From Macrostomum lignano (lineage: Eukaryota), in NCBI GenBank assembly GCA_002269645.1, contig NIVC01001634.1:62001-126000 (forward strand): a stretch of 64,000 nt of DNA, given 5' to 3'. A program made the position numbers and the translations under genes. Below are positions 13,928 through 44,298 of this stretch, in pieces. Every line of letters begins with the position of its first letter. The stretch's first letter is position 1. The notes below the pieces were generated by a model that searched no databases, had not been told where the DNA came from, and was given only the letters and a program-made list of their open reading frames with translations.

Positions 13928-14780
13928 ACCCAAGCATGCATAGGCCTAGCTGCATAATTATAAATCTTGAATTTTTGAGATCTTAAATTTAAAACCAAGA
14001 TTAAAATTAAGAATATTACTAAAATCTTGATGATCAAGAATAATCATCAAAAAAGAGAGAAATAAGAGAAGTTGGTATGAAAAATAATGTTTTTTAATTA
14101 TTAGTATTACTTACTTTATTTAAAACTAAAATTTATATGCAACAATTTCAACTAGACAAAGAGTTGGTTGGGCTAAGATGGTTCTAGCTTATAAGTAGGG
14201 ACATTGGATATTGGAATATGAATGATGGGATTAGCTGAGTAGGTGACAAGGAGCAATTCCAAATGGGCTATAGATTAAGGTGTATTCCACTTGAGACTAG
14301 CCGGGGAAAGGGTGCCTAGATTCTTAAATAGCACTCTTATAAGCCAATAGGAAGAATAGGGTTACCCCAGGTAAGAAGAGAGTTTAATATGCAAAATATT
14401 ACACTCTTTTTATCCTCTCTCCTTATCTCTTCTCAACTTCTATCTCTCTTCTCTTTTTTTCTTATCTCTAATCTCTTCCTCTTCTCTATCCCCTCTTATT
14501 TCTTCTCTCATTTGGTCTGTAGCAATCAACAGATTTTTATCTGGTCCTGTAGGTAAAAAAGGTTTGAAAGGGTAAAAATGGACCAAAGATATAACTAATA
14601 AAAGTTTCACCAATAGTCTTAAAGTGTGGTTAAAAGTCTAAAAAAAGCACTGGAGCACTGATTTCTAACAGTTAGCATAAATAATACTATATGAATCCAT
14701 GTAATCCATTTATGAGTCTAGACAGATATAAGTATAGTTTTTGCTAGACTTTCTACTCATAGTAGCTAAAATTAGTCAAG

Positions 14781-17700
14781 ATGAACCAATCGGCTAGTGA
14801 GGCGCATGCTCGCAGCGTTGAGCAGCAGCTGCTGGAGCAAATTAAACGATTCTTTAAACTATTTGGTCTTGTAACCGGCGTCTGGCTTATTGGCTATCTG
14901 GGCTTCAGTGTCACCTGGCTGGTAGTTGCTGTGCTGGCTTACATCATCACCAGTTACATTAAAGAGCAAAGGAAGGTGCGAACTAAGGCTTTCCAAGCAT
15001 TGGCAAGGTAAGAAGTCTTAGAGGCTCTTGTGTACCAGATCCTCAGTTTCTGGGCCAGCCTCCCAGATCCTCAGTTTCTGGGCCAACCTCCCAGATCCTC
15101 AGTTGCTGGGCCAGCCTCTCAGATCCTCAGTTGGTGGGCCAGCCTCCCAGATCTTCAGTTGCTGGGCCAACCTCCCAGATCCTCAGTTGCTGGGCCAGCC
15201 TTTCAGATCCTCAGTTGCTGGGCCAACCTCCCAGATCCTCAGTTGCTGGGCCAGCCTCCCAGATCCTCAGTTGCTAGGCCAGCCTCCCAGATCCCCAGTT
15301 GCTGGGTCAGCCTCCCAGATCCTCAGTTGGTGGGCCAGCCTCCCAGATCTTCAGTTGCTGGGCCAACCTCCCAGATCCTCAGTTGCTGGGCCAGCCTCTC
15401 AGATCCTCAGTTGCTGGGCCAACCTCCCAGATCCTCAGTTGCTGGGCCAGCCTCTCAGATCCTCAGTTGCTGGGCCAACCTCCCAGATCCTCAGTTGCTG
15501 GGCCAACCTCCCAGATCCTCAGTTGCTGGGCCAGCCTCCCAGATCCTCAGTCGTTGGGCCAGCCTCCCAGATTCTCAGTTGCTGGGTCAGCCTCCCAGAG
15601 TGTCAGTTGCTGGGTCAGCCTCCCAGAGTGTCAGTTGCTGGGTCAGCCTCCCAGATCTTCAGTTGCTGGGCCAGCCTCCCAGATCTTCAGTTGTTGGGCC
15701 AGCCTCCCAGATCCCCAGTTGCTGGGCCACAAGCCTCCCAAAGTGTCAGTTGCTGGGCCAGCCTCCCAGAGTGGCAGTTGCTGGGCCAGCCTCCCAGATC
15801 CTCAGTTGCTTGGCCAGATCCTCAGTTGCTGGGCCAGCCTCTCAGATCCTCAGTTGCTGGGCCAGCCTCCCAGATCCCCAGTTGCTGGGCCACAAGCCTC
15901 CCAAAGTGTCAGTTGCTGGGCCAGCCTCTCAGATCCTCAGTTGCTGGGCCAGCCTCCCAGATCCCCAGTTGCTGGGCCACAAGCCTCCCAAAGTGTCAGT
16001 TGCTGGGCCAGCCTCCCAGAGTGTCAGTTGCTGGGCCAGCCTCCCAGATCCTCAGTTGCTGGGCCAGCCCCCCAGATCCTCAGTTGCTGGGCCAGCCTCC
16101 CAGAGTGTCAGTTGCTGGGCCAGCCTCCCAGATCCTCAGTTGCTGGGCCACAAGCCTCCCAAAGTGTCAGTTGCTGGGCCAGCCTCCCAGAGTGTCAGTT
16201 GCTGGGCCAGCCTCCCAGATCCTCAGTTGCTGGGCCAGCCCCTCCCAGATCCCCAGTTGCTGGGCCCCCTATCCATCACTTACGCGGGTGTTGATTTATG
16301 ATGTAAAGAGTCCTTAAATAATGTTTTGTGTTGCTTTCTTCCCTCACCCAGAGACGAGCGCCAATTCCTGGCTAACGTGGAGAACCTGCCATCCTGGGTG
16401 TTCTTCCCGGATGTGGAGCGGGCCGAATGGCTGAACTCCATTATCAAGCAGGCCTGGCCATTCGTCAAGGATTACGCAGTGTCTATCATTGAGAAACAGA
16501 TCATGCCCGGGGTTAGGGACAACCTGCCTGGGGTGATTCAGGACTTACGATTTTCTAGACTGGATCTGGGCGATATTGCGCCACGTTTTGGCGGAGTCAA
16601 GGTTAGTGTTGAATTATTTTAATAATTCATTAATAAAGTAATCCAATATTTATCATGGTTATCAAATCGTCGTCATTTTTAATCCCATATATTTTGATAC
16701 CAACCTTAAATCCTATTATTCCAAGTCTACATGTATTGGCTGCCTCAAATCCCACTATTCCCAATACATTGCTTCAAATCCCCCATTATCCCAATCCACT
16801 GCCTTAAATCTTATTATCCGTAGTCCACTGCTTCAAATCCATTATCCCTAATCCACTACCTTAAATCCCCCATTATCCTAATCCACTGCCTCAAATCCCC
16901 TATTTCCCCCAATCCACTGCCTCAAACCGCCCATTATCCTCAATCTACTGTCTCAAACCGCCCATTATCCTCAATCTACTGCCTCAAACCGCCCATTATC
17001 CTCAATCCACTGCCTCAAACCGCCCATTATCCTCAATCTACTGCCTCAAATCCCCATTATCCTCAATCTACTGCCTCAAACCGCCCATTATCCTCAATCT
17101 ACTGCCTCAAACCGCCCATTATCCTCAATCTACTGCCTCAAATCCCCCATTATCCTCAATCTACTGCCTCAAACCGCCCATTATCCTCAATCAACTGCCT
17201 CAAATCCCCCATTATCCCCAATCCACTGCCTCAAATCCCCCATTATCCTCAAGTTACTGCCTCAAATCCCCCATTATCCCCAATCCACTGCCTCAAATCC
17301 CCTATTATCCTCAATCTACTGCCTCAAATCCCCCATTATCCCCAATCCACTGCCTCAAATCCCCTATTATCCTCAATCTACTGCCTCAAATCCCCCATTA
17401 TCCCCAATCCACTGCCTCAAATCCCCCATTATCCCCAATCCACTGCCTCAAATCCCATTATCCCCAACCCACTGCCTCAAATCCCATTATCCCCAATCTA
17501 ATCCTTAGAATTTGAATATCCCGTACTCAATAATGTGCTCTAATATCCCGGTGCCGCCTCAAACACATTAACCAGGTGTACACGGGCGACAACACTCGCC
17601 GTTCGGAAATAGTGATGGACATGGACTTAATCTACTATGGCGACGCTAAAATCGAAATGAAAACAAAAGGCATCAAAGCTGGCATCAAAAGTATCGAATT

Positions 17701-20700
17701 GCGCGGCATTCTCCGTGTCGTAATCTCGCCACTGATCCCTCGGATACCTATCGCCGCCTGCGTCACAGTCACGTTTCTGTCCGTGCCGTATTTGAACTTT
17801 GACCTGACCGATCTGGGAAACATACTGGACCTGCCAGGCTTGAGGCAGATGCTTGTCAAAGTGGTTTCCGATCAAATCTCTGCTCAGTTGGTTGTGCCTA
17901 ATAGGCTGTTGGTTCCTTTGGCTGGCGATGTGGACCTGACCGCTATGAAGTGGATCCTGCCGCAGGGGGTTCTTCGGTTTAAGGTGAAATATTTCGTTTC
18001 AAATCTACCTATATGCATCTGTTTGGGGATAATTTTCCCATGGATTTTAGTGTCAGAGTTTGGGATTATTATCCCATTGGATAATCCTATGTTTAGTTTC
18101 ATTGGGATTATTATCCCATCGGATAATCCTATGTATAGTTTTATGGGGATTATTATCCCATCGGATAATCCTATGTATAGTTTCATGGGGATTATTATCC
18201 CATTGGATAATCCTATGTATAGTTTTATGGGGATTATTATCCCATTGGATAATCCTATGTATAGTTTCATGGGGATTATTATCCTATCGGTTAATACTAT
18301 GTTGTGTAGTTTCATGGGGATTATTATCCCATCAGATAATCCTATGTATAGTTTCATGGGGATTATTATCCCATCGGATAATCCTATGTATAGTTTCATG
18401 GGGATTATTATCCCATCGGTTATCCCACTCCCAGCTGGTTAATGCTCCACCACCCATATGCAATGCAGGTAGTGGAGGCTCGAGACCTCAAACGCAGCGA
18501 CGTGGGCCTGATCAGGTCCGGCAAGTCCGATCCCTACGCCATAGTAACAGTCGGCTCGCAAAAGTACACAACCAAAGCGATTGCCAACTCGCTTAATCCC
18601 GTGTGGAACGCCGCATTCGAGGCCGCAGTCGATGTGCGACAGGGTCAGCTATTGGATATTGAACTGTTCGACGAGGATGCCGGATCTAAGGACGATGAGT
18701 TGGGATCTGCTAAAGTCGATCTGGGCAGCGTTGCTAGGGAAGGCGTTCTAGATACCTGGCTGAAACTGGATGATGTGGACACTGGCTCGGTTAGGCTGCG
18801 GATGAGCTGGGCCAACCTGATGGACACGGCCTTGTTTCAGGTGGGCGCTGAGTCTGTTGAGATCGGTGTGGGAGGCTGGGATCAGGTTAAGGTGACTGGG
18901 ATGTGATGTAGGGAAGGGAGGCTGAGATGTGATGTAGAGAAGGGAGGCTGAGATGAGATGTAGAGAAGGGAGGCTGAGATGAGATGTAGAGAAGGGAGGC
19001 TGAGATGAGATGTTGGGAAGGGAGGCTGATATGAGATGTTGGGAAGGGAGGCTGATATGAGATGTTGGGAAGGGAGGCTGAGATGAGATGTAGGGAAGGG
19101 AGGCTGAGATGAGATGTAGGGAAGGGAGGCTGAGATGAGATGTTGGGAAGGGAGGCTGAGATGAGATGTAGGGAAGGGAGGCTGAGATAAGATGTAGGGA
19201 AGGGAGGCTGAGATGAGATGTAGGGAAGGGAGGCTGAGATGAGATGTTGGGAAGGGAGGCTGATATGAGATGTTGGGAAGAGAGGCTGAGATATATTGAG
19301 AGAAGACTAAGAAAAGATGTAGGGAGATCGGAACATAGAGTATAAAGAGATTAAGATCTTAAGGTCTTAAGGTTCAGTCTTGATAAATAGTCATGAACTC
19401 CTTTTAATAACCGGTTGCCAGGCGCCCAGCACACGAGGCAGCGGTGGCGGCGAGTTCAGCCGGGCCTTCCTGTACGTCGGCGTTGACTGCTGCCGCTCTC
19501 TGCCCACGGTGAAGTGCGGCCAGGAGCCTTCAGCTCTGGTAAGTACAGCTAATTCCCCTGACTGAGTCTGGCACAGGTGTGCGTGTCATCGAACCACCCC
19601 CTGTTCCTATGTACATATAAGGGAATCCCACCACTAGGCGCTCGCAATGTACACATAGTTAATCCCACCCTCAACAATGTACACATGGAGAATCCCACCC
19701 TCAACAATGTACACATGGAGAATCCCACCCTCCAAAATGTACACATGGGAATCCCACCCTCCAAAATGTACACATGGGGAATCCCAAATCCCACGCTCCA
19801 CAGTTTATACATGGGGAATCCCACTCCCCAAAATTTACACATTGGGAATCCCACCCTCCGCAATGTACACATGGGAAATCTCGCCCTCTAATGTACTGAT
19901 TGGGAATCTCACCTCCAACCTACACAAAAAAACACGTATTGTCTCGCATATTAGCAAACTATAAGTTTAATTATCAAGCCCTATTAAATACACTACGAAG
20001 GCCAGAGAGTGGACAGCCTAATTTGTTGATCCCCTAATCTATACATAATTGCTGCTAAAACCTCCAGGTGGAAATTAGCGTGACGGGCGGAGGCGGGGGC
20101 AGTGGCAGCAGCTCAACCGACGCGCAGCGCACCGCCACTTTTGAGGACTCGCCAAATCCGATATTCGAAGCGCCGTTTCATTTTTTTGTATCCGAGCCTT
20201 CTATTGCAAGCGTACAGCTGACCGTTCTGCACAGAGGTCGGCGGCGCCTTGGGCAGGTGCAAATACCGCTGCGCTTCCTGCTGCAGGAGGCCAACATGCA
20301 GCTGCATAGGGCCTGGGATCTCAATACTGACAGTGGGACGCAGTCTCAGGTGAGAAGATAGTGCTCTATCTTTAGTGCAGTTTTTTATGCCCTATTTATG
20401 CCGTTTTTTAATTTGAGTAGTGCCATTTTGTGTCTGAGTAGTGCCATTTTGTGTCTGAGTAGTGCCATTTTGTGTCTGAGTAGTGCCATTTTGTGTCTGA
20501 GTAGTGCCATTTTGTATCTGAGTAGTGCCATTTTGTGTCTGAGTAGTGCCATTTTGTGTCTGAGTAGTGCCATTTTGTGTCTGAGTAGTGCCGTTTTGTG
20601 TCTGAGTAGTGCCATTTTTATTTAAATAGTACCATTTTGAGTCTGAGTAGTGCCATTTTTATTTAAATAGTACCATTTTGAGTCTGAGTAGTGCCATTTT

Positions 20701-23206
20701 TATTTAAATAGTACCATTTTGAGTCTGAGTAGTGCCATTGTGCGACCTGAATAGTGCCATTTTTAGTCTGAGTAGTGCCATTGTGTGACCTAAATAGTGC
20801 CATTTTGAGTCTGAGTAGTGCCATTGTGTGTCCTGAATAGTGCCATTTTGAGTCTGAGTAGTGCCATTGTGTGTCCTGAATAGTGCCATTTTGAGTCTGA
20901 GTAGTGCCATTGTGTGTCCTGAATAGTGCCATTTTGAGTCTGAGTAGTGCCATTTTGTGTCTGAGTAGTGCCATTTTGTGTCTGAGGAGTGCCATTTTGT
21001 GTCTGAGTAGTGCCATTTTGTGTCTGAGTAGTGCCATTTTGTGTCTGAGTAGTGCCATTTTGTGTCTGAGTAGTGCCATTTTGTGTCTGAGTAGTGCCAT
21101 TTTGTGTCTAAGTAGTGCCATTTTGTGCCTTAGTGGTGGTTCCATTTTGTGTCTGAGTAGTGCCATTTGTATTTAAATAGTACCATTTTGAGTCTGAGTA
21201 GTGCCATTTTTATTTAAATAGTACCATTTTGAGTCTGAGTAGTGCCATTTTTATTTAAATAGTACCATTTTGAGTCTGAGTAGTGCCATTTTTATTTAAA
21301 TAGTACCATTTTGAGTCTGAGTAGTGCCATTGTGCGACCTGAATAGTGCCATTTTTAGTCTGAGTAGTGCCATTGTGTGACCTAAATAGTGCCATTTTGA
21401 GTCTGAGTAGTGCCATTGTGTGTCCTGAATAGTGCCATTTTGAGTCTGAGTAGTGCCATTTTGTGTCTGAGTAGTGCCATTTTGTGTCTGAGTAGTGCCA
21501 TTTTGTGTCTGAGTAGTGCCATTTTGTTTCTGAGTAGTGCCATTTTGTGTCTGAGTAGTGCCATTTTGTGTCTGAGTAGTGCCATTTTGTGTCTGAGTAG
21601 TGCCATTTTGGGTCTAAGTAGTGCCATTTTGTGCCTTAGTGGTGGTTCCATTTTGTGTCTGAGTAGTGCCATTTGTATTTAAATAGTACCATTTTGAGTC
21701 TGAGTAGTGCCATTTTTATTTAAATAGTACCATTTTGAGTCTGAGTAGTGCCATTTTTATTTAAATAGTACCATTTTGAGTCTGAGTAGTGCCATTGTGT
21801 GTCCTGAATAGTGCCATTTTGAGTCTGAGTAGTGCCATTGTGTGTCCTGAATAGTGCCATTTTGAGTCTGAGTAGTGCCATTGTGTGTCCTAAATAGTGC
21901 CCATTTTGAGTCTGAGTAGTGCCATTGTGTGTCCTGAATAGTGCCCATTTTGAGTCTGAGTAGTGCCATTTTGTGTCTGAGTAGTGCCATTTTGTGTCTG
22001 AGTAGTGCCATTTTGTGTCTGAGTAGTGCCATTTTGAGTCTGAGTAGTGCCATTGTGTGTCCTGAATAGTGCCATTTTGAGTCTGAGTAGTGCCATTGTG
22101 TCCTGAATAGTGCCGTTTTGTGTCTGAGTAGTGCCATTTTGAGTCTGAGTAGTGCCATTGTGTGTCCTGAATAGTGCCATTTTGAGTCTGAGTAGTGCCA
22201 TTGTGTGTCCTGAATAGTGCCATTTTGAGTCTGAGTAGTGCAATTGTGTGTCCTGAATAGTGCCATTTTGAGTCTGAGTAGTGCCATTGTGTCCTGAATA
22301 GTGCCCATTTTGAGTCTGAGTAGTGCCATTGTGAGTCTGAGTAGTGCCATTGTGTGTCCTGAATAGTGCCATTTTAAGTCTGAGTAGTGCCATTTGTATT
22401 GAAAAGTGCCATTGTCATTCTGTTTACTTCATGTCAGAATGCTTCCATTCCGAATCCTCCAGAAACGTTTTTTGCCTATGAAAATTAGCTCAGTTTTTTA
22501 TAAATCTTCATATAAAAATCACCCCCACCCCCAGATCGTCCTGTTCCTGGCCCTTCGCGCCATTGTTGAAGGCCAATACGAAGCTCCAGCCGAAATTCCC
22601 GTTAAAACGATACCTGCAGCTGAGGCAGCCGAACCAGCTCAGGCTGAAGCTCAAGATGAACCCGAGGCCGCTAATACAATTTCAACCAACTCGGACAGCG
22701 ATGGTGTCCGGCAGCGAAAAAATGCACCCGCCGCCGCACCCGCCGCCGCACCCGCCGCCGCAACCGCCGCCGCACCATCTCAGCAGGGCAGAGTGCAGCT
22801 TACCATCCGCTACAGCCAGCCGCGCCAATGCCTTGTAGTGGTGTGCCACCAAGCCGACTTGCCCATAGCAACCGTTGCTACGGACGACTCGAGCTTGGAT
22901 CCGTACGCTAAGCTCTACATCAAATCCGACAGTCGAGGCGCTGTGTCTTCAAAGAAGCAGAAGACTAAGACGATGAAAGCTACTAGGAACCCAGTTTATG
23001 ACGAGTCTTTCGAATTCTCCCTGCCAGAGTCCGACTTATCCAGCAGCTCGCTCTGCGTGGCTTTGATGAAGCAGTGCGGCAAACTGATTGGCGGCAAGAA
23101 CCATCAGATTGGCTTGGCCAGCATTGCACTGGCAGATTTGGAGCAGAATGCCGCTACTGTTTGGTACGATTTGAAGACGGCTGCTGGGATGGCTGGCGAC
23201 GAGTGA
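14781..23206 (+). CDS. ESYT2: Extended synaptotagmin (TM hairpin, SMP, C2A, C2B, C2C; E-Syt2-like), 775 aa. Exons 14781-15007, 16352-16601, 17576-17983, 18469-18840, 19422-19538, 20068-20349, 22535-23206
   Basis: SMP signature LPSWVFFPDVERAEWLNSIIKQAWP. C2A motifs GKSDPYA and IELFDED...KDDELG. C-terminal C2C with NPVYDESFEF. All six introns are GT-AG with matching phases, and the total of 2328 nt is divisible by 3. Confidence 0.93.
15033..16268. repeat. 28-bp minisatellite (CAGTTGCTGGGCCAGCCTCCCAGATCCT) filling E-Syt intron 1
   Basis: Direct periodicity between donor 15008 and acceptor 16351. Confidence 0.97.
16740..17500. repeat. 31-bp minisatellite (CCACTGCCTCAAATCCCCCATTATCCCCAAT) in E-Syt intron 2
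   Basis: Direct periodicity. Confidence 0.95.
18055..18425. repeat. 42-bp minisatellite in E-Syt intron 3
   Basis: The translation repeats GIIIPSDNPMYSFM (14 aa). Confidence 0.95.
18900..19292. repeat. 26-bp minisatellite (GATGTAGGGAAGGGAGGCTGAGATGA) in E-Syt intron 4
   Basis: Direct periodicity. Confidence 0.95.
19625..19915. repeat. AATGTACAC-core minisatellite of about 30 bp in E-Syt intron 5
   Basis: Repeated AATGTACACATGG...AATCCCACCCTC. Confidence 0.88.
20411..22395. repeat. 21-bp minisatellite (TGAGTAGTGCCATTTTGTGTC) with higher-order variants in E-Syt intron 6
   Basis: Direct periodicity over about 2 kb. Confidence 0.97.
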
Positions 23207-23299
23207 CTGATTGATTGACAAGTGGTTTCTGGACTCTCGGTATTTCACACCTTTGCTATGCAGGTGCTTTGTTTTTTTAGATTTGTTTTGTTTTCTCAT

Positions 23300-24005
23300 T
23301 GGGGTTGGGGATTTGAGCAATCTCTTATTGGGATTTGGGATTTGAGCATCTCTTATGGGGATTTGGGTTTTGAGCATCTCTTATGGGGATTTGGGATTTG
23401 AGCATCTCTTATGGAGATTTGGGATTTGAGCATCTCTTATGGAGATTTGGGATTTGAGCATCTCTTATGGGGATTTGGTATGTGAGCATCTCTTATGGGG
23501 ATTTGGGATTTGAGCATCTCTTATGGGGATTTGGGATTTGAGCATCTCTTATGGGGATTTGGGATTTGAGCATCTCTTATGGGGATTTGGGATTTGAGCA
23601 TCTCTTATGGGGATTTGGGATTTGAGCATCTCTTATGGGGATTTGGGATTTGAGCATCTCTTATGGGGATTTTGGGAATTTAAGCTATTTCTTGAGGAGA
23701 TTTTGGATGTGAGCGATCTCTTGTGGGGATTTGAGCAATCTCTTGTGAGAATTTGAGCAATCTCTTGTGAGAATTTGAGCAATCTCTTGTGAGGATTTGA
23801 GCAAGCTCTTATTGGGATTTGGAATTTGAGCAATCTGTCATGGGGATTTGGAATTTGAGCAATCTGTCATGGGGATTTGGAATTTGAGCAATCTGTCATG
23901 GGGATTTGGAATTTGATCAATCTGTCATGGGGATTTATAATTTAAGCAATCTTCCGTAGAGATTTTGGGGATTTAAGCGATCTCTTTTGGGGGATTTGAG
24001 ATTTG
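23300..24005. repeat. 28-bp minisatellite (GGGATTTGAGCATCTCTTATGGGGATTT) downstream of the E-Syt stop
   Basis: Direct periodicity. Confidence 0.95.
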
Positions 24006-24859
24006 ATCTATGTCTTTTAATCCTATTTCTATCTAAGTTTGTCTCTCTTATTTATTAAAACAGATTATTAAACATTTTGAATCAATTTCCATTAGTGTAA
24101 ATTAACCCATTATTTGCCAATTCCTATCATTTTTTATTATTGACGTTTTTATATGTTCTGTGCTTTGTTTTTCATGCTGATGACAATAGAGATTTATGTA
24201 TCTATTTCTGTCTAAACTACTGTACAAACAGCTAATATATTTTAACTATTTATTATTTTTTTTTCAAGTCGAGTTTTGTTTCGTAAAGAAGATCATCAGT
24301 GGCTTTAATTGCTGTTATTCGTAGCCAAATTTTATCTTTAAAACCAGTTTTTAAAAATTATATTCTACTTTTTGTTCCTCTTATCCATCTGCAGCTTGCC
24401 TTGCCTTGAAAGATTAATAAATGATTTTTCTATTTTATCTATCTCTGTACAATTTGATATAGTTGTGTACTCAAGTTATTTTGTTTTGGTGTGCCGAATA
24501 TTTCTATATCAATATTGCTGGCCAAATAAGTTCAATCAGACAGACTGCTCTCCAGCTGTTTCTGTTCCCTTTTTGTATCTCCTTTTTATTGTTACTTTTT
24601 CTAGTAGTCCTTTTTCTAAATTTAGACTGGCTTCTATTAGCTTCTGCTGGCACTGCTTTTTGCTGCTGTCTTTTGTGTGAAGCAATTTTACTCTCTCTCG
24701 CTAATGAGCACTGTAGTTCACTGTGAACTATTCAATTTAATTGGGTCAGCGTGTTGCCTTGGCTTTTTTATTCTATTGGCATTCGAGTACTGCTTGTTGG
24801 CTTTGTTGCTTATTGACTTTTTAGCTGGCTGGATAAGATTGAGTAAGTGGTATAGGGAT

Positions 24860-25640
<781 letters not shown>

Positions 25641-25754
25641 AGAATTCCAATGTCCTGAAGTCCAAATAGGGTATAGAATTCTCACTTGTCATCAGAATTT
25701 TATTATCTCTAGATCTACTAGTACTAAAAAAATCAGCTCTCTGATTGCTTCCAG

Positions 25755-26246
25755 GAGCAGCAAGAGCAGCAGCGGCAGCAGTCGGACCCGAGCTACGCCG
25801 AGCGCCTCGGCCGCATCGAGCTGACCCTCCGCTACAGCCCGGCCCGGCAGAGCCTGGTGCTGGCCTGCCACCGGGTGCAGCTGCTGCCGCAGCCAGCGGG
25901 CCCCACCGTAGACGCAAATCTCTGCAATCCCTACGTAAAATTCTCCATAGAAACAGCGGCATCTTCTGCTTATGCTAATCAGCAATCCAAGAAGCAGAGC
26001 AAGCGCACCGGTACAGCGCGCTCCACTCTCACGCCTGTGTTCGATGAGTCGTTTGATTTTCAAGTGAACGAAATTGAATTGTCTTATCGTTACCTGCGGG
26101 TTCGAGTGCTGCATAGGAAACCGAAGAGCAAGAGCATTCTGCCTGGCCCGGCGGCGCGTCTTAGTCGGGGCGTGTTGCTGGGCTCGGCTCGAATCTCTCT
26201 GGCTGATTTTGAGCACAACTCCACTGCTTGGTACGAGTTAGGGTGA
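25755..26246 (+). CDS. Extra exon encoding a paralogous E-Syt C2C-type domain with no in-frame Met (alternative last exon, or 3' exon of a small TM-C2 gene)
   Basis: Acceptor TTCCAG at 25754. The frame reads EQQEQQRQQSDPSYAERLGRIELTLRYSPARQSLVLACH...NPYVK...TPVFDESFDF...LGSARISLADFEHNSTAWYELG*, collinear with the exon-7 C2C (GRVQLTIRYSQPRQCLVVVCH...NPVYDESFEF...IGLASIALADLEQNAATVWYDL). AATAAA at 26305. Confidence 0.75.
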   Translation, partial: EQQEQQRQQSDPSYAERLGRIELTLRYSPARQSLVLACHRVQLLPQPAGPTVDANLCNPYVKFSIETAASSAYANQQSKKQSKRTGTARSTLTPVFDESFDFQVNEIELSYRYLRVRVLHRKPKSKSILPGPAARLSRGVLLGSARISLADFEHNSTAWYELG

Positions 26247-26365
26247 CAGCGTGTACTTTTAATTGGCTTTTGAAGTAAACGGTTTTTTAACATGATTTAA
26301 AAAAAATAAAGTTGTGCAATAAATTATGCTGCAATCAGTTCATTAATTAATCAATCAGTTACTTT

Positions 26366-27574: not shown

Positions 27575-27742
27575 TGCTAGGCTACAACCCCTTACAACAG
27601 CTACTTAAGTAAGTAGTATATCTATCTATAAACAGCCTTCAGTTATTAAGTAAGTAGCATGATTATTATCAAGCATCTATAGTAGTATCTATATTTTAAT
27701 AAATTTTTATTAACTTAGCAGTATTTTTACTGATATTTTCGC

Positions 27743-32921
<5,179 letters not shown>

Positions 32922-33354
32922 GTTAATGATGAGTTAAAAACTGTTTTTGTCACTGGAGCTTCATTCGTCTCTTTAGTATATTGACTAGCTTTCTTTGCCC
33001 CCCTCTCGGTGTCTCCTCCAACTCTTACAGTTCTCTCTCTCTCCTTTATTGATTGTATTGTTAAAGTGCTTCCCTTTAGACAGTGACCATTGATTTGTTC
33101 AAACCTAATAAATAAATTCTTTTGGTTGCTAATTGCATGTATTTTTTATCGACATTGCACATTCCACTGTTTCTATTTTTACGTCAAATCTATTTAATGA
33201 TAAAATTTTCTATATAAATTTTCTAAATATTGATCTTAAAGTAAACTTAAACTTAAATATTTTTTTGTCAACTTGATTTAAATTTACTGGCATCCAATTA
33301 ACTTGTCTTAAATATTTGTTACTTCTAAGTTTATTCACTCATCTGATTGCATTT

Positions 33355-33670: not shown

Positions 33671-33708
33671 ATGTTACCTAGCAACTCGCAACTTACCGAT
33701 TTCCTAAA

Positions 33709-36700
33709 ATGCATGCGATGCAGCAAAACTCCAGCCAAGAATGCTACAACTGTCCTGCTGCCAGCATAGCAACAGATCTGTTCGTATGCGGCCTATGCTC
33801 AGTTAGCTTTCACGAGCTGGGCCAGTTTCTGGCGCACAGGAATTCCAACTGCTTGGCCGCGACCGGCAATGCCGGCTGCAACTACGCGGCCGCGTCATCG
33901 TCCACTGCTGGCAGGTTTCTGACTCACCTGCAGCAGGTTGAGCCGCCGCCTAACCATCAGTCCCCAGCCGCCTGCCTGAGCCAGGGCTACAGTGCTCCGC
34001 CAACTGCCGTTGTTGTTGCCACGGATGACTTTGTTGGCCAGCAGAGTCTGCCGTTTTTACCTGCCGATGCTGGTCCAACGGTGAGGAAGTACTTGATGTA
34101 CTGTTTTCTTTTTAGGAAGTGTTGGGAACAACTAGCAACCGATTAGAAAGTTTCATCACTTGACTCCACACCCACCAAATAATTAATTTGAATACCGCCC
34201 GGAGTCGAACCAGTCCTTCTGCTTATCAGAGCGGCGTTATTGGCCACTAATTGGACCTCCCCTAAGTTTAAATCGAATCAAATTGACAAATATATAAGCT
34301 GTTGAAGCCCGCGACTTTTGAAGTCATACTGAAACAAAAACGTGTTAATAGTTTCGATTGAAGTTTGAAAAATTTGAGTAAATTCTTGTTAAATTAGGAT
34401 TTGAGGCAAGCATTGATCTCATCGGCTGGGGTGCCGCACAGAATGAGTCTGTTTAAACCATGTGTGGGCAAACTCTGGTCTCTGCCTCTTTCTCCGTCCC
34501 GATCTGGTTCTTTGAAACTTATCTCCTCTCTCCTCTTTCCTCTCTCCTTTCTTTTCTCATCCCATGTATCATCTCCTCCTCTCTCCTCTCTTATCCCTTT
34601 TCTTTTTTATCTCATCTCTCCTGTCTTATCTCTTCTCTCTTCTCTCTTCTCTCTGCTCGCTTATCTCTACTCTCTCCTCTCTTCCCTCCCCTTTTCTCTC
34701 TTCTCTCTTCTCACTGTTACTCTCTCTTCTCGTATATATATATTTTTTATTACACCTGCCCTAATGGCCGCAGCTTTTGCTGTTCAGTCCAAGTACTGGG
34801 GGGTCGCCACACACAGCCTCAATTGCCCCAGCTAATGCTGGTGCCCATTTTACAGCTGGGTGAACTGAAGCAATGCAGAGTTAAGTGTCTTGCTCAAGGA
34901 CACAAATTGTTCCAGTCCAGTATTGGATTCAAGAATCGAACCCCCGACCTCCTTGCCAGCAGTCCGACACTCTAACCACTAGGCTACAACCCCCATTTAC
35001 ATATTGAACCATTGCCAATCATTTTAAAGGCCTATTCAAACGGCATGGCGGATCCAACTGCAAGTCACCAGCAGCAGCACCAGCCTCAGTCAACTGTCAC
35101 AGTGCCCAATTGCGGCTACTTTGATCCTGCAGCTTTGACACCTGCCAACAATCAGCACGTGCATCAGCAGGTGCCTCATCAGAACCCGATGGTTCAACAA
35201 ATGCAATCAGAGGATGAGCAGCATCAGTCAGCTTTGCCATTAACTGCTCTTCTCTCTGAGGCATCAGTGGTCATTGATAGTACAGGTGCTTCATCAGTTG
35301 CAGTACCAGACTCTGCAGCCTCCAATTGCTTTCATCATCCACCTGTCAATCAGCAGCAGCAATATGAAGATTGCACTCATCAGCAGTATTCTAACAGCTA
35401 CGCAGATCCTTATAATCTGCAGCAGCAGCAGCAGCAGAATTATGAGTTGTACGCGGCCAATACTACTTGTCAGCAGCATCAGCAGTATCAGCATGATCAG
35501 TCGCAAATGTTTGCAGAAAATCACGCGGTCAATTCTTATTATAGTTATCAGCAGCAAGCGGCAGTGGGTCATCAAGGTCATCAGGGTCATCAAGGTCATC
35601 AGGGTCATCAAGGTCATCAGGGTCATCAGGGTCATCAAGGTAATCAGGATCATCAAGGTCATCAAGGTCATCAAGGTCATCAAGGTCATCAAGGTCATCA
35701 GGGTCATCAAGGTCATCAGGGTCATCAGGGTCATCAAGGTAATCAGGATCATCAAGGTCATCAAGGTCATCAGGGTCATCAAGGTCATCAGGATCACCAG
35801 GGTCATCAAGGTCATCAGGGTCATCAGTCGTCTTTTATCCAGCAACCGCAGCCAGCACCTGCTGCAATGATGTCGGAACAAGTTTTAGCACCTTCTTCTT
35901 CGTTAGCCAGTGCTAACAGACAATCGCGAACAGGCGGCGAACAAAGAAACGATAATCAACGCTCTAAAGTGACGTTGCTACGTTCAACTGACAGGCCGCA
36001 GATGTTTCCTTGCACAGTGTGCAACTTTGTGTGCAAATATCAGAATCAGCTGACCCTGCACATGAGAAAGCATACGGGTTAGTTTTGCGGTTATACTACT
36101 ACTCGATTTTTTGTTTATAAGTAGCGTAGTATCTGGTATGAATAACATGATTTTCGATACATATCGGCCAAAGAACACTTGTAGAGAATTCTTAAGATAG
36201 TTTATTTTCCAAAAAATCCGGTATATATTTTTTATATTATTTTCGATACATATCGGGTGTTAATTTTCATTTAATAGTTTAGTTTGGTTTATGAAATTAT
36301 TTTTAGTTAAAAACATGAGATTGCTAAATTTGCTGTTCACAGTACTCGATAACTTGTCCTTGTAAGTAGTTTAGTTTGAATATATGTTTTATATATATGT
36401 ATCGAATATATGCTTTTCGATACATATCGGCTATTTATTGCTATCAACCTTTATTGTCCGCAGGCGAGAAGCCATTCCAATGCGCTATTTGCGGTCGGTC
36501 TTTCTCATTGAAGCACAACGTTCGCAAACACATGAACTCGCACAGGATCTGGCCCGCAGCGGCAGCGCCCCCGCCTGCTGCTACATCATCTTCATCTCCA
36601 GCTCCCGCTGAGGCTGCTGCACCGAATTCGACATCTGCTGGTCAGCCTTCGACTGTTGTCGACACCGCGTCTGGTGTCGAGGCAGCAACCGGTCAATCGT

Positions 36701-39190
36701 CGGTTGCTATGGCAACAGAGTCGAACTCGCCAAGTGTTCCAGCCGACGCCTTGCTAGTTCGGCCGTCCAAGTCGGTCAGCGCGGCTGTCCGGACTAAGGC
36801 GTACACCATACTGGAGTCTGACGGCCTGGGCCGGCACTCCTCGGAGCCTTTGGTAATTATAGCCTGCGGTTTTTCTTAGAAATTCAATACTGCGATAATC
36901 TAAGATTGAGGCTATTTATTAGCGTTGCCAGTTTAATGTTTAATGTCTTGAAATTAGTCTCTAATAAATAATAATCGGCTTAAAATAGTCCCTCTTTAAC
37001 AATGTACTTTAAAATCGCCTACTTAAGATCGACCCCTAAAAACGCCCTCCCTCCTTAAAATCGCCCTCCCCCTCTAAGAATCGCTTTCCCCTAAAAATCG
37101 CCCTCCCTCCTAAAAGTATTCTTCCTCTCAAAAACCGCCCTCCTAAGAATCGCCCACCCCCAAAAATTGACAATCCCTAAAAACCGCTTTCCCCATAAAA
37201 ATCGTCTTCCCCCTAAAAATCGCCCCCTAAAAATCGTCACCTAAAAATGCCTGCAAATTCCCAATCCTAAAATCGCCCCGAAACGCCCCCCCCCCTAGGT
37301 ACTCGTTGACAGCCGCCACGAGTGCCGCTTCTGCGGCCAGTGCTTCCCCAATTTCCATCAGCTTCGCAGCCACCTGCACCGGCTGCACCAACAATTAAAA
37401 GTCTACCGCTGCCTGCTGGCCTCATGCCAGTTCCAATGCGGTCCATTAGATCCGTTTCTAAAGCACCTGGAGCAGCACAGGGCCGCGGGCGAGCTGTCCT
37501 ATCCGTGTCAGAAGTGCGGTGATCAGTTCAGCACGCTGCAGCAGCTGGCTCTGCACGAAGCCGCGCACTCGCCAACTGCCGCTGACAAAGACGATGCTGA
37601 CGACAGCGTCACCGACAGCCAAGACGATTCCAACAATGAGCAGGTCCGAAGCAGGAGCACCCGGAAGAAGCCTTCTTCCTCTTCTGCTTCTGCAAAGAAG
37701 AAATCTAGATTGTCTGGTCGAAGGCGGGCAAGGTTTGTAAAATACTACTAGCAGGGATTTTAGATGATTGGGGAATACCATCCTAGTGCTGGGCCGTCTG
37801 GAGCTTGAGTACCTGGAGCTTGAGTACCTGGAGCTTGAGTACCTGGAGCTTGAGTACCTGGAGCTTGAGTACCTGGAGCTTGAGTACCTGGAGCTTGAGT
37901 ACTTGGAGCTTGAGTACCTGGAGCTTGAGTACCTGGAGCTTGAGTACCTGGAGCTTGAGTATCAGTTTGAGTACCTGGAGCTTGAGTACCTGGAGCTTGA
38001 GAAACCTGGAGCTTGAGTACCTGGAGCTTGAAAAACCTGGAGCTTGAGTACCTGGAGCTTGAGTACCTGGAGCTTGAGTGCCGGGAGCTTGAGTACCGGG
38101 AGCTTGAGTACCGGGAGCTTGAGTACCGGGAGCTTGAGTACCGGGAACTTGAGTACCGGGAGCTTGAGTACCTGGAGCTGGCACCGGGATCTGACACCGA
38201 TAGCTGAGTCACTAATGCCACTCCCCCATTATCTCAACATTAATCCCCCCCTTCAGCGCCGCGGACAACAGTTGCCGCTGCCTGGAATGCGGCGCCCAGT
38301 TCAAGAGCAGCCGGGCCGCGCTGGTGCACAAGCACCAGGCCCACCACCGGACACATTGCTGCCCAGTCTGCCGCAAGAAATTTGTCTTTTATAAGCGGCT
38401 TTGCGAGCACATGGCCAGCCACGGTGCCCTGTCGGAGCTGCCGAAGCCGGCCAGTCGAAATGTCCAACGTCGATTTGTCTGTCCGATGTGTCCGAACCGC
38501 TACCGGCTGAGGGTGCAGCTGGACTATCACCTGGTGACGGTGCATCATCAGTCAGCTAATAGGTCCATAGTTAGTGCCAACAATCAGTCCCTGGCCTGCC
38601 CGATTGAAGGCTGCCCGAGCCGCAGCGGCACTCAGGCTCACCTGAAGCTGCACCTGCTTCGCCAGCATCGCAATCGAGCTATTGACGCCTCCGTGACCCA
38701 GTTCGACTGCGACATCTGTCCCAGACGGTTGTACAACAAGCGAGCTTTCCTGAGGCACATGCGAAAGCACGAGCAAGCCGAGCGGGTTTCTGCTTCTAGG
38801 AGGCAACAGGAAACTGTGGCTTGCTGTCAGGTGTGCGGCAGAAAGTTCAAGCGATTAAACGCTTTGAAATTGCACGAGTCAACTTGCAGAAGCAGCAATA
38901 GCGGCAATAGAAGCAATAGAAGCAAGCCGGGAAACATTGATCCGACTAGTTGCGACAGTCTACGGAGGTCTGACCGGTTGCGGTCCAAGAGACAGGCTGG
39001 GAACCAGTGTAGTGAGCAGCTGAGTCTATTAGAGGACCGAACTGATCACTGTTCGGAGCTGGCGTCTTCTCAGATGTGTACGGAAGAAGATATTGGGCAA
39101 AAGCAGCAGCAGCAGCAGCAGCAGAGTTTTCTACAGTTATTGCCTGACTTTGATTCTGCTAATAACAGCTTGATTCCTATTGATTATTGA
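33709..39190 (+). CDS. ZNF341: ZNF341-like C2H2 zinc-finger transcription factor, 1058 aa. Exons 33709-34080, 35030-36077, 36464-36852, 37299-37732, 38257-39190
   Basis: N-terminal [12 protein letters not shown]...FLAHRNSNC finger. [33 protein letters not shown] resembles ZNF341 HTGEKPFQC...NVKKHMQTHKVWP. It is followed by [14 protein letters not shown] and LSYPCQKC fingers and further C-terminal fingers. Splice phases 0/1/0/2 are consistent (3177 nt). Confidence 0.88.
34194..34263 (-). pseudogene. Degenerate tRNA-like sequence or SINE head in ZNF341 intron 1
   Basis: The minus strand has an A-box-like GTCCAATTAGTGG, a CTGATAA loop and a B box GGTTCGACTCC, but the stems do not pair properly. 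Confidence 0.35.
34745..34993 (-). mobile_element. tRNA-derived CORE-type SINE, second near-full copy (ZNF341 intron 1)
   Basis: Near-identical core to 27290-27574, with the same A and B boxes on the minus strand. Confidence 0.85.
35567..35827 (+). repeat. Coding 9-bp repeat: 29 tripeptide units (GHQ, with GNQ and DHQ variants) inside ZNF341 exon 2
   Basis: 261 nt, in frame between acceptor 35029 and donor 36078. Confidence 0.92.
37005..37290. repeat. AAAATCGCCC-core degenerate repeat in ZNF341 intron 3
   Basis: Same core as MOCOS introns 2 and 4. Confidence 0.8.
37798..38180. repeat. 15-bp minisatellite (GGAGCTTGAGTACCT) in ZNF341 intron 4
   Basis: Direct periodicity. Confidence 0.96.
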
Positions 39191-39254
39191 CACTATTGAC
39201 AGTTTTAGTCTAATGACAATTGCATTTTTAAAGGTTAAATTGCTATTTATATAC

Positions 39255-40235
39255 ATGGGATAATCCTTTGATGATTAATTTGACCTGGGATAATCATGTG
39301 TTGATTAATTTCACCTGGGATAATCATTTGGTGATTAATTTCACCTGGGATAACCATTTGTTGATTAATTTCACCTGGGATAACCATTTGTTGATTAATT
39401 TCACTTGGGATAACCATTTGTTGATTTATTTCACCTGGGATAACCATTTGTTGATTAATTTCACCTGGGATAACCATTTGTTGATTAATTTCACCTGGGA
39501 TAATCATTTGATGATTAATTTCACCTGGGATAATCATTTGGTGATTAATTTCACCTGGGATAACCATTTGTTGATTAATTTTACCTGGGATAATCATGTG
39601 TTGATTAATTTCACCTGGGATAATCATTTGTTGATTAATTTCACCTGGGATAACCATTTGGTGATTAATTTCACCTGGGATAACCATTTGTTGATTAATT
39701 TTACCTGGGATAATCATGTGTTGATTAATTTCACCTGGGATAACCATTTGTTGATTAATTTCACCTGGGATAATCATTTGATGATTAATTTCACCTGGGA
39801 TAATCATTTGATGATTAATTTCACCTGGGATAATCATTTGGTGATTAATTTCACCTGGGATAACCATTTGTTGATTAATTTTACCTGGGATAATCATGTG
39901 TTGATTAATTTCACCTGGGATAATCATTTGTTGATTAATTTCACCTGGGATAACCATTTGGTGATTAATTTCACCTGGGATAACCATTTGTTGATTAATT
40001 TTACCTGGGATAATCATGTGTTGATTAATTTCACCTGGGATAACCATTTGTTGATTAATTTCACCTGGGATAATCATTTGATGATTAATTTCACCTGGGA
40101 TAATCATTTGATGATTAATTTCACCTGGGATAATCATTTGGTGATTAATTTCACCTGGGATAATCATTTGATGATTAATTTCACCTGGGATAATCATTTG
40201 ATTATTAATTTCATTTGGGATAATCATGTGTTGAT
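39255..40235. repeat. 30-bp minisatellite (TTGATTAATTTCACCTGGGATAACCATTTG), about 33 copies
   Basis: Direct periodicity starting about 65 nt after the ZNF341 stop. Confidence 0.97.
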
Positions 40236-40529
40236 AAAATTCATATTGTTCATGTGCACATGTACTGCTCCTTGAAGTTCGTCTGCAATTGTTTAATTGA
40301 CATCTCAGGTATCAACTAGGATTAGTATTAACTAGGAATCTTAGAATTGATTAATGTATTTCTTGGAATTGGTAATCGTATATCTGGAAATCAATGCAAA
40401 ATAGAAAATACAACGCAACATTCAGCCAATTTTATGGTGATGTTTTTCCGCTGTTTTAATGAATTTATCGGTTATCATTTATATGTTTTTGTTAGTTTAT
40501 AACTAATATGTCTAATTATTCATCCACTC

Positions 40530-40915
40530 TCACAAATGTACACTCGCTGCACACCAACCCTATCCCAATGTACACTCACTCCACACCCACCCCATCCCAA
40601 TGTACAGTCACCCCACAGCCATTCCGTCCCAATGTACACTCACTTCGCACCCTTCCCCCTCAATTTACACTCAATTCGCACCCTTCCCCCTCAATGTACG
40701 CTAACTTCACACCCACCCCTCCCAACGTACGCTCACTCCACACCCACCCCCTCACAATGTACACACTTGCTCCACACCCACCCCTCCCAATGTACAGTCA
40801 CTCCACACCCACCCCTCCCAATGTACACTCACTCCACACCCATCCCTCCCAATGTACACTCACTCCACACCCTTCCCCCTTAATGTACACTCACTCCGCA
40901 CCAACCCCTAATGTA
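40530..40915. repeat. AATGTACAC-core minisatellite of about 31 bp upstream of NOP10
   Basis: Repeated AATGTACACTCACTCCACACCC. Confidence 0.88.
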
Positions 40916-41012
40916 CTTCTCTTTATAATGGAACTACAAAACCACTTGCATGCTTCAAAACAGCTTCATCAATTCGATCTAGGCTCTATAAAAATCTCTC
41001 AATAAACCAAAG

Positions 41013-41207
41013 ATGCTGCTCCGCTACTACCTGAACGAGCAGGGCGAGCGAGTTTACACTCTGAAATCGGTAGACCCGGATGGCAAGCCGACCCAGTCGG
41101 CCCACCCCGCCAGGTTCTCGCCGCACGACCCCTACTCCCGGCATCGCATCACCATCAAGAAGCGTTTCGGCCTGCTGCCCACACAGCAGCCGCCTGTGGT
41201 CTATTAA
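41013..41207 (+). CDS. NOP10: H/ACA ribonucleoprotein subunit 3 (NOP10), 64 aa, intronless
   Basis: [18 protein letters not shown]...[27 protein letters not shown] is the NOP10 consensus. AATAAA at 41251. Confidence 0.97.
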
Positions 41208-41454
41208 TTTGACCTCGCTTAACCTTGACTTTTAATCGTGTACTTTTAAAAATAAAGCCTCTTTATTCGCAATGTGAAACGACAGTTTATAAATAAAAAT
41301 GTCTACCAGCCTCATTAGTGGCGAGCATTTCTACTGCGTTGCTAGCTGGGATTTCAGGAACTGAAACTGGGGTTTGAGGTTTGTTTCTTTTTGGTTAATT
41401 CTTTAATAGTTATAGTGTTATTAAATTTGCAGTTTACTCGTATTTCTTAGCTCA

Positions 41455-42337
<883 letters not shown>

Positions 42338-42419
42338 ATTTACAGTGCCTCCCCAATCTCTCAAGCAGCATCCCACAGCGGTAATTCAGTAAACCAAGTC
42401 ACCCGCTGCCAAGCACAGG

Positions 42420-42785
42420 ATGGGCAAGTCCAAGGGTGCAACAGGCGGCGGCGGTGGCGGCAAAGACAAGGACGCCAAAGAGAAAAAAGGCGGCACAGCC
42501 GTGAAAGTCCGTCACATCCTGTGCGAGAAGCAGTCTAAGTGTCTGCAAGCTCTCGAGCTATTAAAATCTGGACGAAGATTCAACGAGGTGGCGTCGGAAT
42601 TCTCCGAGGACAAGGCGCGGTCTGGCGGCGACCTCGGCTGGATGACGCGCGGCTCGATGGTTGGCGACTTTCAAGACGCCGCGTTCGCTTTGCCAATCAG
42701 CTCGCTGGACAAGCCGGTTTTCACTGACCCGCCCGTGAAAACTAAGTTTGGCTATCACATCATCATGGTGGAGGGGAAGAAGTAG
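42420..42785 (+). CDS. PIN4: Parvulin-type peptidyl-prolyl isomerase PIN4/Par14, 121 aa, intronless CDS
   Basis: Basic Gly/Lys-rich N-tail followed by [31 protein letters not shown] and [18 protein letters not shown]. Confidence 0.97.
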
Positions 42786-42879
42786 CCCTGCTGCTGTATG
42801 GCTCTGGTTCACTTTGGCCAAAGCTGCGAGGCAATCTGTTTTATGGAAGATATGCATCTGTCTGCCTCTGCCCATCTGC

Positions 42880-43670
42880 CTCCCACCGTCTCCTTCTCCC
42901 TCCCTCTCTCCTCTCTCTCACTTTCCTCTCTCCTCCCCTCTCTCCTTACATTCTCTCCTCTCTCACTCTCCCTCTTCCCTCCCCTCCTCTCTCCCTCTCG
43001 CCCTCCTTCTCCCTCTCTCTCCTCTCCCTTTCTCCCTCCTCCCTCCTCTCTCCTCCCTCCCTCTCCTCTCCCTTTCCCCCTCCTCCCTCCTCTCTCCTCT
43101 CCCTTTCCCCCTCCTCCCTCCTCTCTCCTCCCTCCCTCTCCTCTCCCTTTCCCCCTTCTCCCTCCTCTCTCCTCCCTCCCTCACCTCTCCCTTTTCCCCT
43201 CCTCCCTCCTCTCTCCTCCCTCCCTCTCCTCTCCCTTTCCCCCTTCTCCCTCCTCTCTCCTCCCTCCCTCACCTCTCTCCCTCTCGCTCTCCTTCTCCCT
43301 CTCTCTTCTCCCTCTCTCTCTCTCCCCTCTCTCCTTCTCCCTCTCTCTCCTCCCCCCTCTCCCCCCTCTCTCTCCTCTCCCTCTCCTCTCCCCCTGTCCC
43401 CCTTCTCCCTCCTCTCTCCTCCCTCCCTCACCTCTCTCCCTCTCGCCCTCCTTCTCCCTCTCTCTTCTCCCTCTCTCTCTCCCCCCTCTCTCTCCTCTCC
43501 CTCTCCTCCCCCCTCTCCCCCTCTCTCTCCTCTCCCCTCTCCCCCTCCCCCTCCTTCTCCCTCTCTCTCCTCCCCCCTCTCCCCCCTCTCTCTCCTCTCC
43601 CTCTTCTCTCCCCCTCTCCCCCTCCCCCTCCTTCTCCCTCCTCTCTCCTCCTTCCCTATCTTCTCCGTCT
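42880..43670. repeat. CT-rich low-complexity tract downstream of PIN4
   Basis: Almost purely pyrimidine on the plus strand. Confidence 0.95.
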
Positions 43671-44088
43671 CTCACACTACATCTCTGAGTATATCTTTAC
43701 TGCAGATAAGAAACAGAATTAAAAACTCTCCAGTGCAGATTTCTCTCTGTTAAATAAAGAAGTAGGCCAGTTCAATTCGCTCTGATCCTGGTGTTCGTTC
43801 GCTAGTTGGTTGCTTGTCTCGTTTAACATGATTCTTTAGACTGAGTTCGGAATGTACAAAACCTGAAATAAATTAAATGTAATTGTAGCAAACGGCATTG
43901 TTGCTACTATAAATGTGCTCAATGTTTTTGTATATCTGCACTTTTTAGTGCCTTTTTGATTTTTTGATTTCAATTGTCTATGGCACATTGAGATCATTTC
44001 CAAACAAGGCACTTCATCTTGCTAGGCAAGATGTTTTCAAAGGTTCTTCTATTTAAAAATCATATTCATCTTCGAGCCAACTAACAAA

Positions 44089-44298
44089 ATGCCTGATGCC
44101 TTGAAACGTCGGGTGCCTTCATTTCGCGAGGTGTACATGCTGAGGCCTATCGACCTGCTTTACCTGGAGCCTGGCTACATTCTCGGGCTCACTGTGTCCG
44201 TGATCCTGCTGCTATTGCTGAGCAAGATTTGGCAATACTTTGCCGAAGATGAGGATAATAAAGCCGGCGCGGACAGTTTAAAATATTCTCTCGAATAA
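44089..44298 (+). CDS. Putative 69-aa single-pass membrane micro-protein, family not recognised
   Basis: ATG start, exon-like GC-rich codons within AT-rich flanks, one hydrophobic helix (YILGLTVSVILLLLLSKIW) and acceptor-like AGs at 44025 and 44042. Confidence 0.55.
   Translation: MPDALKRRVPSFREVYMLRPIDLLYLEPGYILGLTVSVILLLLLSKIWQYFAEDEDNKAGADSLKYSLE

Follow-up and report, generated by a model that had tools for sequence, protein, structure and literature searches.

A same-strand gene cluster of Macrostomum lignano as a plausible spliced-leader operon

We analysed a 64-kb stretch of DNA from the flatworm Macrostomum lignano (64,000 nucleotides of contig NIVC01001634.1, assembly GCA_002269645.1; hereafter the window, in whose coordinates all positions are given). 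It carries six coding units, all of them + strand and all within 14781-44298: E-Syt, MOCOS, a C2H2 zinc-finger gene (ZNF), NOP10, PIN4 and an open reading frame (ORF) of 69 aa, the micro-ORF. On balance we lean towards the view that at least part of this cluster is a true polycistronic unit resolved by spliced-leader (SL) trans-splicing; its co-transcription is what we infer. The best candidate for a polycistronic precursor would span the zinc-finger gene and NOP10, and probably also PIN4 and the micro-ORF. Cleavage and polyadenylation at the 3' end of the upstream gene would divide such a precursor into mRNAs, and the single 35-nt SL of M. lignano would then be trans-spliced to an acceptor immediately before the coding region that follows. 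The long spacers would be short intercistronic regions inflated by minisatellite arrays, as has been published for the M. lignano genome. We regard the cluster as a plausible, unproven example of an operon type that is already catalogued in this species.

Cluster layout and the M. lignano operon rule

The genes of the cluster are:

14781-26246, + strand, E-Syt gene (Pfam SMP_LBD and three C2 domains, with a further C2 ORF at 25.7-26.2 kb)
27743-32921, + strand, MOCOS gene, 7 exons (Pfam Aminotran_5, MOSC_N and MOSC)
33709-39190, + strand, C2H2 zinc-finger gene with several C2H2 fingers (call on record 33718-39190, 1055 aa)
41013-41207, + strand, NOP10, single exon, 64 aa (Pfam Nop10p)
42420-42785, + strand, PIN4 (parvulin), single exon, 121 aa (Pfam Rotamase)
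44089-44298, + strand, micro-ORF, 69 aa, one hydrophobic helix (gene call in all three paralogous contigs)

E-Syt, MOCOS, NOP10 and PIN4 were identified by their characteristic Pfam domain sets. The six genes follow one another without interruption, and no convincing - strand coding ORF lies among them. An initial annotation of this DNA, which read the cluster as one polycistronic unit, had counted six or seven coding units on one strand; Pfam matches and ORFs confirm six, whereas the best reading of the seventh is as an alternative last exon of E-Syt (see below). The third gene, ZNF341-like in that annotation, is recognised here as a C2H2 zinc-finger gene by its fingers. The stop-to-ATG spacers measure 1496, 787, 1822, 1212 and 1303 nt in gene order, which bears out the 0.8-1.8 kb given in that annotation. 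Around the cluster there are gene-poor gaps of 13.7 kb upstream and 7.8 kb downstream, with - strand genes beyond. The run of six consecutive same-strand genes, and spacers of 0.8-1.8 kb compared with these flanks, are the informative features of the locus.

The appeal of the initial annotation to flatworm SL trans-splicing was to the right biology, as SL operons with repeat-inflated spacers have been published for M. lignano (PMC8629364, PMC5730564). The organism uses one 35-nt SL ending in ATG; 30% of its genes are SL-spliced and 15% lie in operons (PMC8629364). Repeats inflate the spacers of these operons, and the repeat-adjusted distance between trans-spliced (TS) genes peaks at ~100 bp, TS-TS gene pairs at short adjusted distance being an operon signature in this species (PMC8629364). 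Under the rule of Ustyantsev & Berezikov (2021, PMC8629364), genes belong to one operon if they lie on the same strand at an adjusted distance of <1 kb and the downstream gene is SL-spliced.

We calculated adjusted spacers by subtracting TRF arrays and repeats recurring within the window, with poly(A) sites estimated from AATAAA hexamers. The resulting values are 596, 343, 407, 186 and 250 nt in gene order, all five below 1 kb. SL splicing of the downstream gene is on record, as a published flag, for NOP10, one of the five downstream genes. The ZNF>NOP10 pair falls under the published operational definition of an operon; the other four pairs do so on geometry only. The SL RNA gene itself need not be nearby, and a search of the window for the 35-nt SL and all its 12-mers found none, so that no SL RNA gene lies within it. 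[quoted passage not shown]

Candidate acceptors and poly(A) signals at the gene boundaries are listed below; YTNCAG stands for the acceptor motif [T/C]TNCAG.

14761-14762, + strand, candidate AG before E-Syt, ctactcaTAG/TAGC; not YTNCAG; the 150 nt before the ATG hold 15 AGs, this one included
26305-26323, + strand, two AATAAA hexamers (26305 and 26318), 60-75 nt past the stop of the second terminal C2 exon of E-Syt
27720-27721, + strand, candidate AG before MOCOS, aacttagCAG/TAT, 21 nt before the ATG
33107-33116, + strand, AATAAATAAA downstream of MOCOS, whose stop codon ends at 32921
33680-33681, + strand, candidate AG before the zinc-finger gene, ttaccTAG/CAA; an SL AUG joined there would be in frame with the ORF
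41001-41012, + strand, AATAAA at 41001-41006, then, with 4 nt between, AG at 41011-41012 abutting the NOP10 ATG
41251-41425, + strand, NOP10 poly(A) signals, AATAAA at 41251 and 41292 and ATTAAA at 41420
42344-42345, + strand, candidate AG before PIN4, gtatTTACAG/TGCC; fits YTNCAG and directly follows the (TGTC)n array
44024-44042, + strand, two candidate AGs before the micro-ORF, cttgcTAG/G ending at 44025 and ttcaaAG/G ending at 44042; neither is YTNCAG

The AGs, the AATAAA hexamers and the repeats, on which the initial annotation had relied, are not themselves operon evidence. Its coordinates are exact: AG dinucleotides end at 14762, 27721, 33681, 41012, 42345, 44025 and 44042, and AATAAA starts at 26305, 33107, 41251 and 43753. 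The diagnostic value of these positions is weak, however. The 150 nt that precede each start codon hold 3-15 AGs, so one close to the start is to be expected anyway, and it is normal for a gene to be followed by a poly(A) signal. Joining the SL AUG to the AGs near the starts and testing for frame and short upstream ORFs was uninformative, nearly all AGs being compatible.

The principal repeat arrays in the spacers and 3' untranslated regions (UTRs) are:

26365-26932, + strand, 23-nt minisatellite of ~25 copies in the E-Syt>MOCOS spacer
39256-40243 and 40535-40908, + strand, two minisatellite arrays (30-mer x33 and 31-mer x12) that make up most of the ZNF 3' UTR and spacer
41455-42335, + strand, (TGTC)n of ~220 copies, nearly the whole NOP10>PIN4 spacer
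42879-43665, + strand, CT-rich degenerate repeat in the PIN4 3' UTR, with AATAAA 43753 further 3'

Tandem repeats account for fractions of 0.40, 0.26, 0.78, 0.73 and 0.60 of the five spacers in gene order. The claim that the spacers consist largely of tandem repeats is therefore accurate to the extent of 26-78%, but nothing about it is specific to operons: the window as a whole is 41% tandem repeat, and in the introns of E-Syt and MOCOS the share is 46-92%. Spacers full of repeats thus reflect the genome and not an operon. Most of nearly every E-Syt and MOCOS intron is taken up by a single private array with a repeat unit of its own. Upstream of the cluster, only 19% of the 13.7-kb gene-poor stretch is tandem repeat.

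The NOP10 acceptor and its neighbouring junctions

The v3 annotation table of PMC5816591 lists NOP10 (Mlig022085.g3,.g1) as TRANSSPLICED, with a length of 444 and the class 'Neoblast, stringent'. Among conserved M. lignano genes 45% are SL-spliced, and among neoblast genes 85% (PMC8629364). In the public collection the NOP10 ORF is encoded by exactly three contigs, all from GCA_002269645.1 (Mlig_3_7). On the first, NIVC01001634.1, positions 100013-106207 match window 38013-44207 at 100% identity. The other two contigs are paralogous copies, ~90-98% identical, with the same order ZNF > NOP10 > PIN4 > micro-ORF; such copies are expected, because a recent duplication has been described for the M. 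lignano line. The 130 nt upstream of the three NOP10 copies are nearly identical (a single 1-nt indel). Given three near-identical copies, the TRANSSPLICED flag belongs to the present locus or to a near-identical copy of it.

We asked which AG would account for the published length. The 470 nt upstream of the NOP10 ATG contain AGs at 40797, 40963, 40982 and 41012 only, and a 444-nt mRNA starting from them would end at 41241, 41407, 41426 and 41456, respectively. Only the last of these ends lies at a normal distance (31 nt) past a poly(A) hexamer, the ATTAAA at 41420, and AG 41012 is preferred for this reason. Judged from this one length value, AG 41012 is the best-fitting candidate for the NOP10 acceptor. 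If it is used, the SL AUG would stand directly in frame before the NOP10 AUG, and hardly anything but (TGTC)n (41455-42335) would separate the NOP10 3' end from the candidate acceptor of PIN4 at 42345. Proteins that would result from SL fusion (M+NOP10 and SYCEDSIYCM+NOP10) are absent from a collection of 15 billion proteins, which itself holds no M. lignano transcript contigs for the locus.

The upstream side of the same junction is equally tight. Between the ZNF stop and NOP10 there is a single AATAAA (41001), 4 nt before AG 41012. A ZNF 3' end signalled from here would leave no intercistronic room, which argues that ZNF and NOP10 share a precursor. The ZNF 3' signal and the NOP10 acceptor would nearly overlap at 41001-41012.

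Public gene models of the region are chimeric. UniRef100_A0A1I8JP35 (717 aa, named PIN4) fuses four genes, namely the ZNF C-terminus, NOP10, PIN4 and the micro-ORF. Chimeric models have been taken as a sign of polycistronic precursors in another flatworm study (PMC12582326), and ~7% of assembled M. lignano transcripts are multi-gene precursors (Wudarski et al. 2017, PMC5730564). We regard the A0A1I8JP35 fusion as weak support for a polycistron, as an ab initio predictor could yield it without RNA. Look-ups of protein clusters gave no locus tags tying the cluster genes to one transcriptional unit. Correcting the models of this locus would in any case be of value for annotation.

Independent genes, longer units and known operon systems

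Several observations weigh against a shared precursor. The NOP10 flag alone is no proof of co-transcription, because 60% of SL-spliced M. lignano genes lie outside operons (PMC8629364), and a search of the supplements of three M. lignano papers for PIN4, MOCOS and ESYT returned no matches. The adjusted E-Syt>MOCOS spacer (~600 nt) is far from the 100-nt mode. Among the AGs of the initial annotation, 42345 (TTACAG) alone fits YTNCAG, the others being TAG, GCAG or AAG; the motif is present at only 44% of mapped M. lignano trans-splice sites (PMC8629364). TATA-like strings occur upstream of NOP10 (40921 and 40987) and of the micro-ORF (44050), so these two genes may have separate promoters. A de novo NOP10 transcript of 2016 (496 nt, type 5UTR_CDS_3UTR) lacks the TRANSSPLICED flag and reaches at least the in-frame TAA at 40989, implying some RNA upstream of 41012. 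The assembly of 2016 flagged 6,167 transcripts compared with 28,273 later (PMC5730564), which makes the missing flag a weak negative; the transcript itself could equally be a precursor or use AG 40963.

For PIN4 and the micro-ORF, the recorded gene calls also fail to begin where an SL-spliced mRNA with the listed acceptors would. The PIN4 call starts at 42411 with a non-ATG codon (KHRM...), not after AG 42345, and it excludes the in-frame TAA at 42390, so that the underlying transcript does not start at 42346. The micro-ORF call likewise opens with a non-ATG codon (FEPTNKM...), at 44071 in two of its copies, not after AG 44025 or 44042; in the remaining one of the three it begins 12 nt further upstream. 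Both calls are ORFs that are open at the 5' end. We do not take these odd starts as a refutation of the operon reading. Call starts differ between near-identical paralogues (42411 and 44071 in the window; L004:13178). SL reads mapped with mismatches were considered as a source of the non-ATG starts; PIN4, with an acceptor at 42413, would be compatible with this, the micro-ORF and NOP10 not.

The most serious alternative, to which we give a substantial though smaller share of our belief, is that each gene has its own promoter. NOP10, and perhaps other genes, would then be monocistronic and SL-spliced, and the shared strand would reflect coincidence or ancient linkage. The prevalence of SL splicing outside operons, the TATA-like strings and the non-AG starts of the PIN4 and micro-ORF calls are all as such an arrangement would have them. 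The chance probability of six same-strand genes in a run is ~3%, which is not negligible genome-wide. Compact promoters could be accommodated in the unique spacer segments (186-596 nt), and ≤2 kb upstream from the point where transcription starts suffices for correct reporter expression of tested M. lignano genes (PMC5730564). Independent genes sit less easily with spacers that are far shorter than the flanking gaps of 13.7 and 7.8 kb, and with a short adjusted TS-TS distance being an operon signature in this species. They are also difficult to reconcile with the two junctions of NOP10: the AATAAA at 41001 is so close to the NOP10 acceptor, at a distance of 4 nt, that the ZNF 3' end and NOP10 have no room between them, and a poly(A) site near 41456, as inferred above, would leave the NOP10>PIN4 spacer with nearly no unique sequence beside (TGTC)n.

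A polycistronic unit covering part of the cluster is thus the reading we prefer, and its extent bears on the full model of the initial annotation. In that model one promoter at ~14.7 kb drives a single ~30-kb precursor of six genes, which is resolved exactly at the listed AGs. The shared strand of this proposal is confirmed, and the adjusted spacers of 186-596 nt and the NOP10 flag agree with it; the PIN4 and micro-ORF calls do not begin at the listed AGs. All five spacers pass the <1-kb adjusted rule, no - strand gene interrupts the cluster, AG 41012 fits the 444-nt NOP10 mRNA, and operons of up to nine genes exist in M. lignano. Most are much smaller, with 75% containing two genes, 18% three and ~7% four or more (PMC8629364). 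Read-through would also have to pass the internal alternative terminal exons of E-Syt with their own poly(A) signals, AGs 42345 and 44025/44042 differ from the starts of the calls on record, and YTNCAG is missing from five of the six listed sites. We consider the full model unlikely. Still further down the scale, and very improbable in our judgement, is a six-gene operon of ~30 kb with intercistronic regions of almost pure minisatellite and the C2 unit at 25755-26246 as an extra cistron using the SL AUG; it would rank with the longest operons of flatworms and allow a test of how polymerase and the machinery of 3' end formation and trans-splicing deal with kilobase repeat arrays between cistrons.

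Compared with the SL operons already known from M. lignano, the cluster is alike in its shared strand, its mostly conserved housekeeping genes, its simple-repeat spacers that collapse to a few hundred nucleotides, and the single SL ending in AUG. It differs in that SL status is known for one of five downstream genes and that six genes would be unusually long. The present locus is not individually described in the accessible text of the M. lignano operon papers (PMC5730564, PMC8629364). If confirmed, it would add one more, unusually long, example to the ~ten thousand M. lignano genes already in SL operons, and it would indicate that minisatellite arrays can expand within intercistronic regions without breaking the unit.

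The SL2-type operons of C. elegans resemble the proposed unit in the way a precursor is resolved, with 3' end formation and SL trans-splicing coupled, in a typical intercistronic distance of ~100 nt and in their enrichment for housekeeping genes. The raw spacers here reach 0.8-1.8 kb through minisatellites, however, and downstream genes of C. elegans receive a dedicated SL2 while M. lignano has one SL only (PMC8629364), so the cluster is not of the SL2 type. Parasitic flatworm operons (Schistosoma, cestodes; PMC12582326) are alike in having same-strand pairs with an SL acceptor before the second gene; that study used a raw-distance threshold of 300 bp, which none of the five spacers here passes without repeat subtraction.

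Some operons of tunicates (Ciona, Oikopleura) have no intercistronic regions, the poly(A) signal lying beside the acceptor. This arrangement resembles the ZNF>NOP10 junction, with its AATAAA 4 nt before the AG; the likeness is only a lead. The other four junctions have clear spacers instead.

E-Syt terminal exons, further features and paralogous copies

E-Syt begins with exon 1 at 14781-15007 and exon 2 at 16352-16601, followed by exons encoding the SMP and C2 domains; the exon-6 donor is at 20350. Two terminal C2 exons follow, each with its own stop: e7 (22403-23206) and e8 (25755-26246). The latter has no ATG and is preceded by a strong acceptor, TTCCAG, at 25754. A junction search found the exon-6 donor in phase with the acceptors of both exons, and e7 and e8 are 39% identical. 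Because of this common phase and identity, the C2 unit at 25755-26246 is most simply read as an alternative last exon of E-Syt. As far as the sequence can tell, the paralogous terminal exons suggest isoforms that differ in their membrane-binding C2 ends.

The SL AUG has been described as a translation initiator in flatworms. The same C2 unit could in principle be a separate SL-trans-spliced cistron, translated from the AUG at the SL 3' end. The acceptor at 25754 is a perfect YTNCAG, the exon begins in phase 0, so that the SL AUG would be in frame, and the ORF, devoid of an ATG, has its own stop and AATAAA. We nevertheless find a separate cistron improbable: the exon-6 donor of E-Syt is in phase with this acceptor too, the exon duplicates e7 at 39% identity, as alternative last exons usually do, and no separate gene call was seen for 25755-26246.

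The MOCOS exons lie at 27743-27901, 28361-28960, 29914-30246, 30489-31010, 31584-31835, 31970-32220 and 32735-32921. This seven-exon model has consensus GT-AG junctions and encodes 767 aa; the recorded gene call is equally long. Within exon 2 of the zinc-finger gene, positions 35567-35826 are an in-frame coding repeat, (GGTCATCAA)n, which encodes a (GHQ)n tract and yields a spurious Pfam Collagen match. The N-terminus of the zinc-finger protein, used as a query, gave no matches.

The micro-ORF matched no Pfam family, and word-index and full HMMER searches found no homologue outside M. lignano; it appears to be lineage-specific. A PIN4 homology search aimed at synteny in M. cliftonense and M. 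hystrix gave no other Macrostomum among the best 120 matches listed; among these, the next-best after the M. lignano call were from insects and other animals.

The genes flanking the cluster are:

470-1108, - strand, upstream ORF with a weak TNFR16 transmembrane-like match
52096-53343, - strand, rhodopsin-family GPCR, apparently single exon, downstream
58451-58960, - strand, ORF, downstream
61121-63209, - strand, LIM-homeobox gene, downstream

Rfam and tRNA scans of the window found no RNA family and no tRNA. A dispersed repeat of ~200 nt has copies that are 86-87% identical at 27371-27569, 34779-34988 and 1150-1222 (- strand); copies sit in the E-Syt>MOCOS spacer (27371-27569) and in an intron of the zinc-finger gene. 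One end of this repeat carries a tRNA-like T-arm string, in which ARAGORN calls no tRNA. An inverted repeat at 13781-13927, in the AT-rich region ~0.9 kb upstream of the E-Syt start, has 61-nt arms that are 85% complementary and a 25-nt loop, and may be a MITE-like element.

In one of the paralogous copies, that on NIVC01001811.1, PIN4 is intact (98% identity), yet without a gene call. The PIN4 3' UTR and spacer of this copy contain a GC-rich insertion of ~5 kb (L006:11862-16911). The same ~150-nt sequence is found at both ends of the insertion, which is probably a transposable element.

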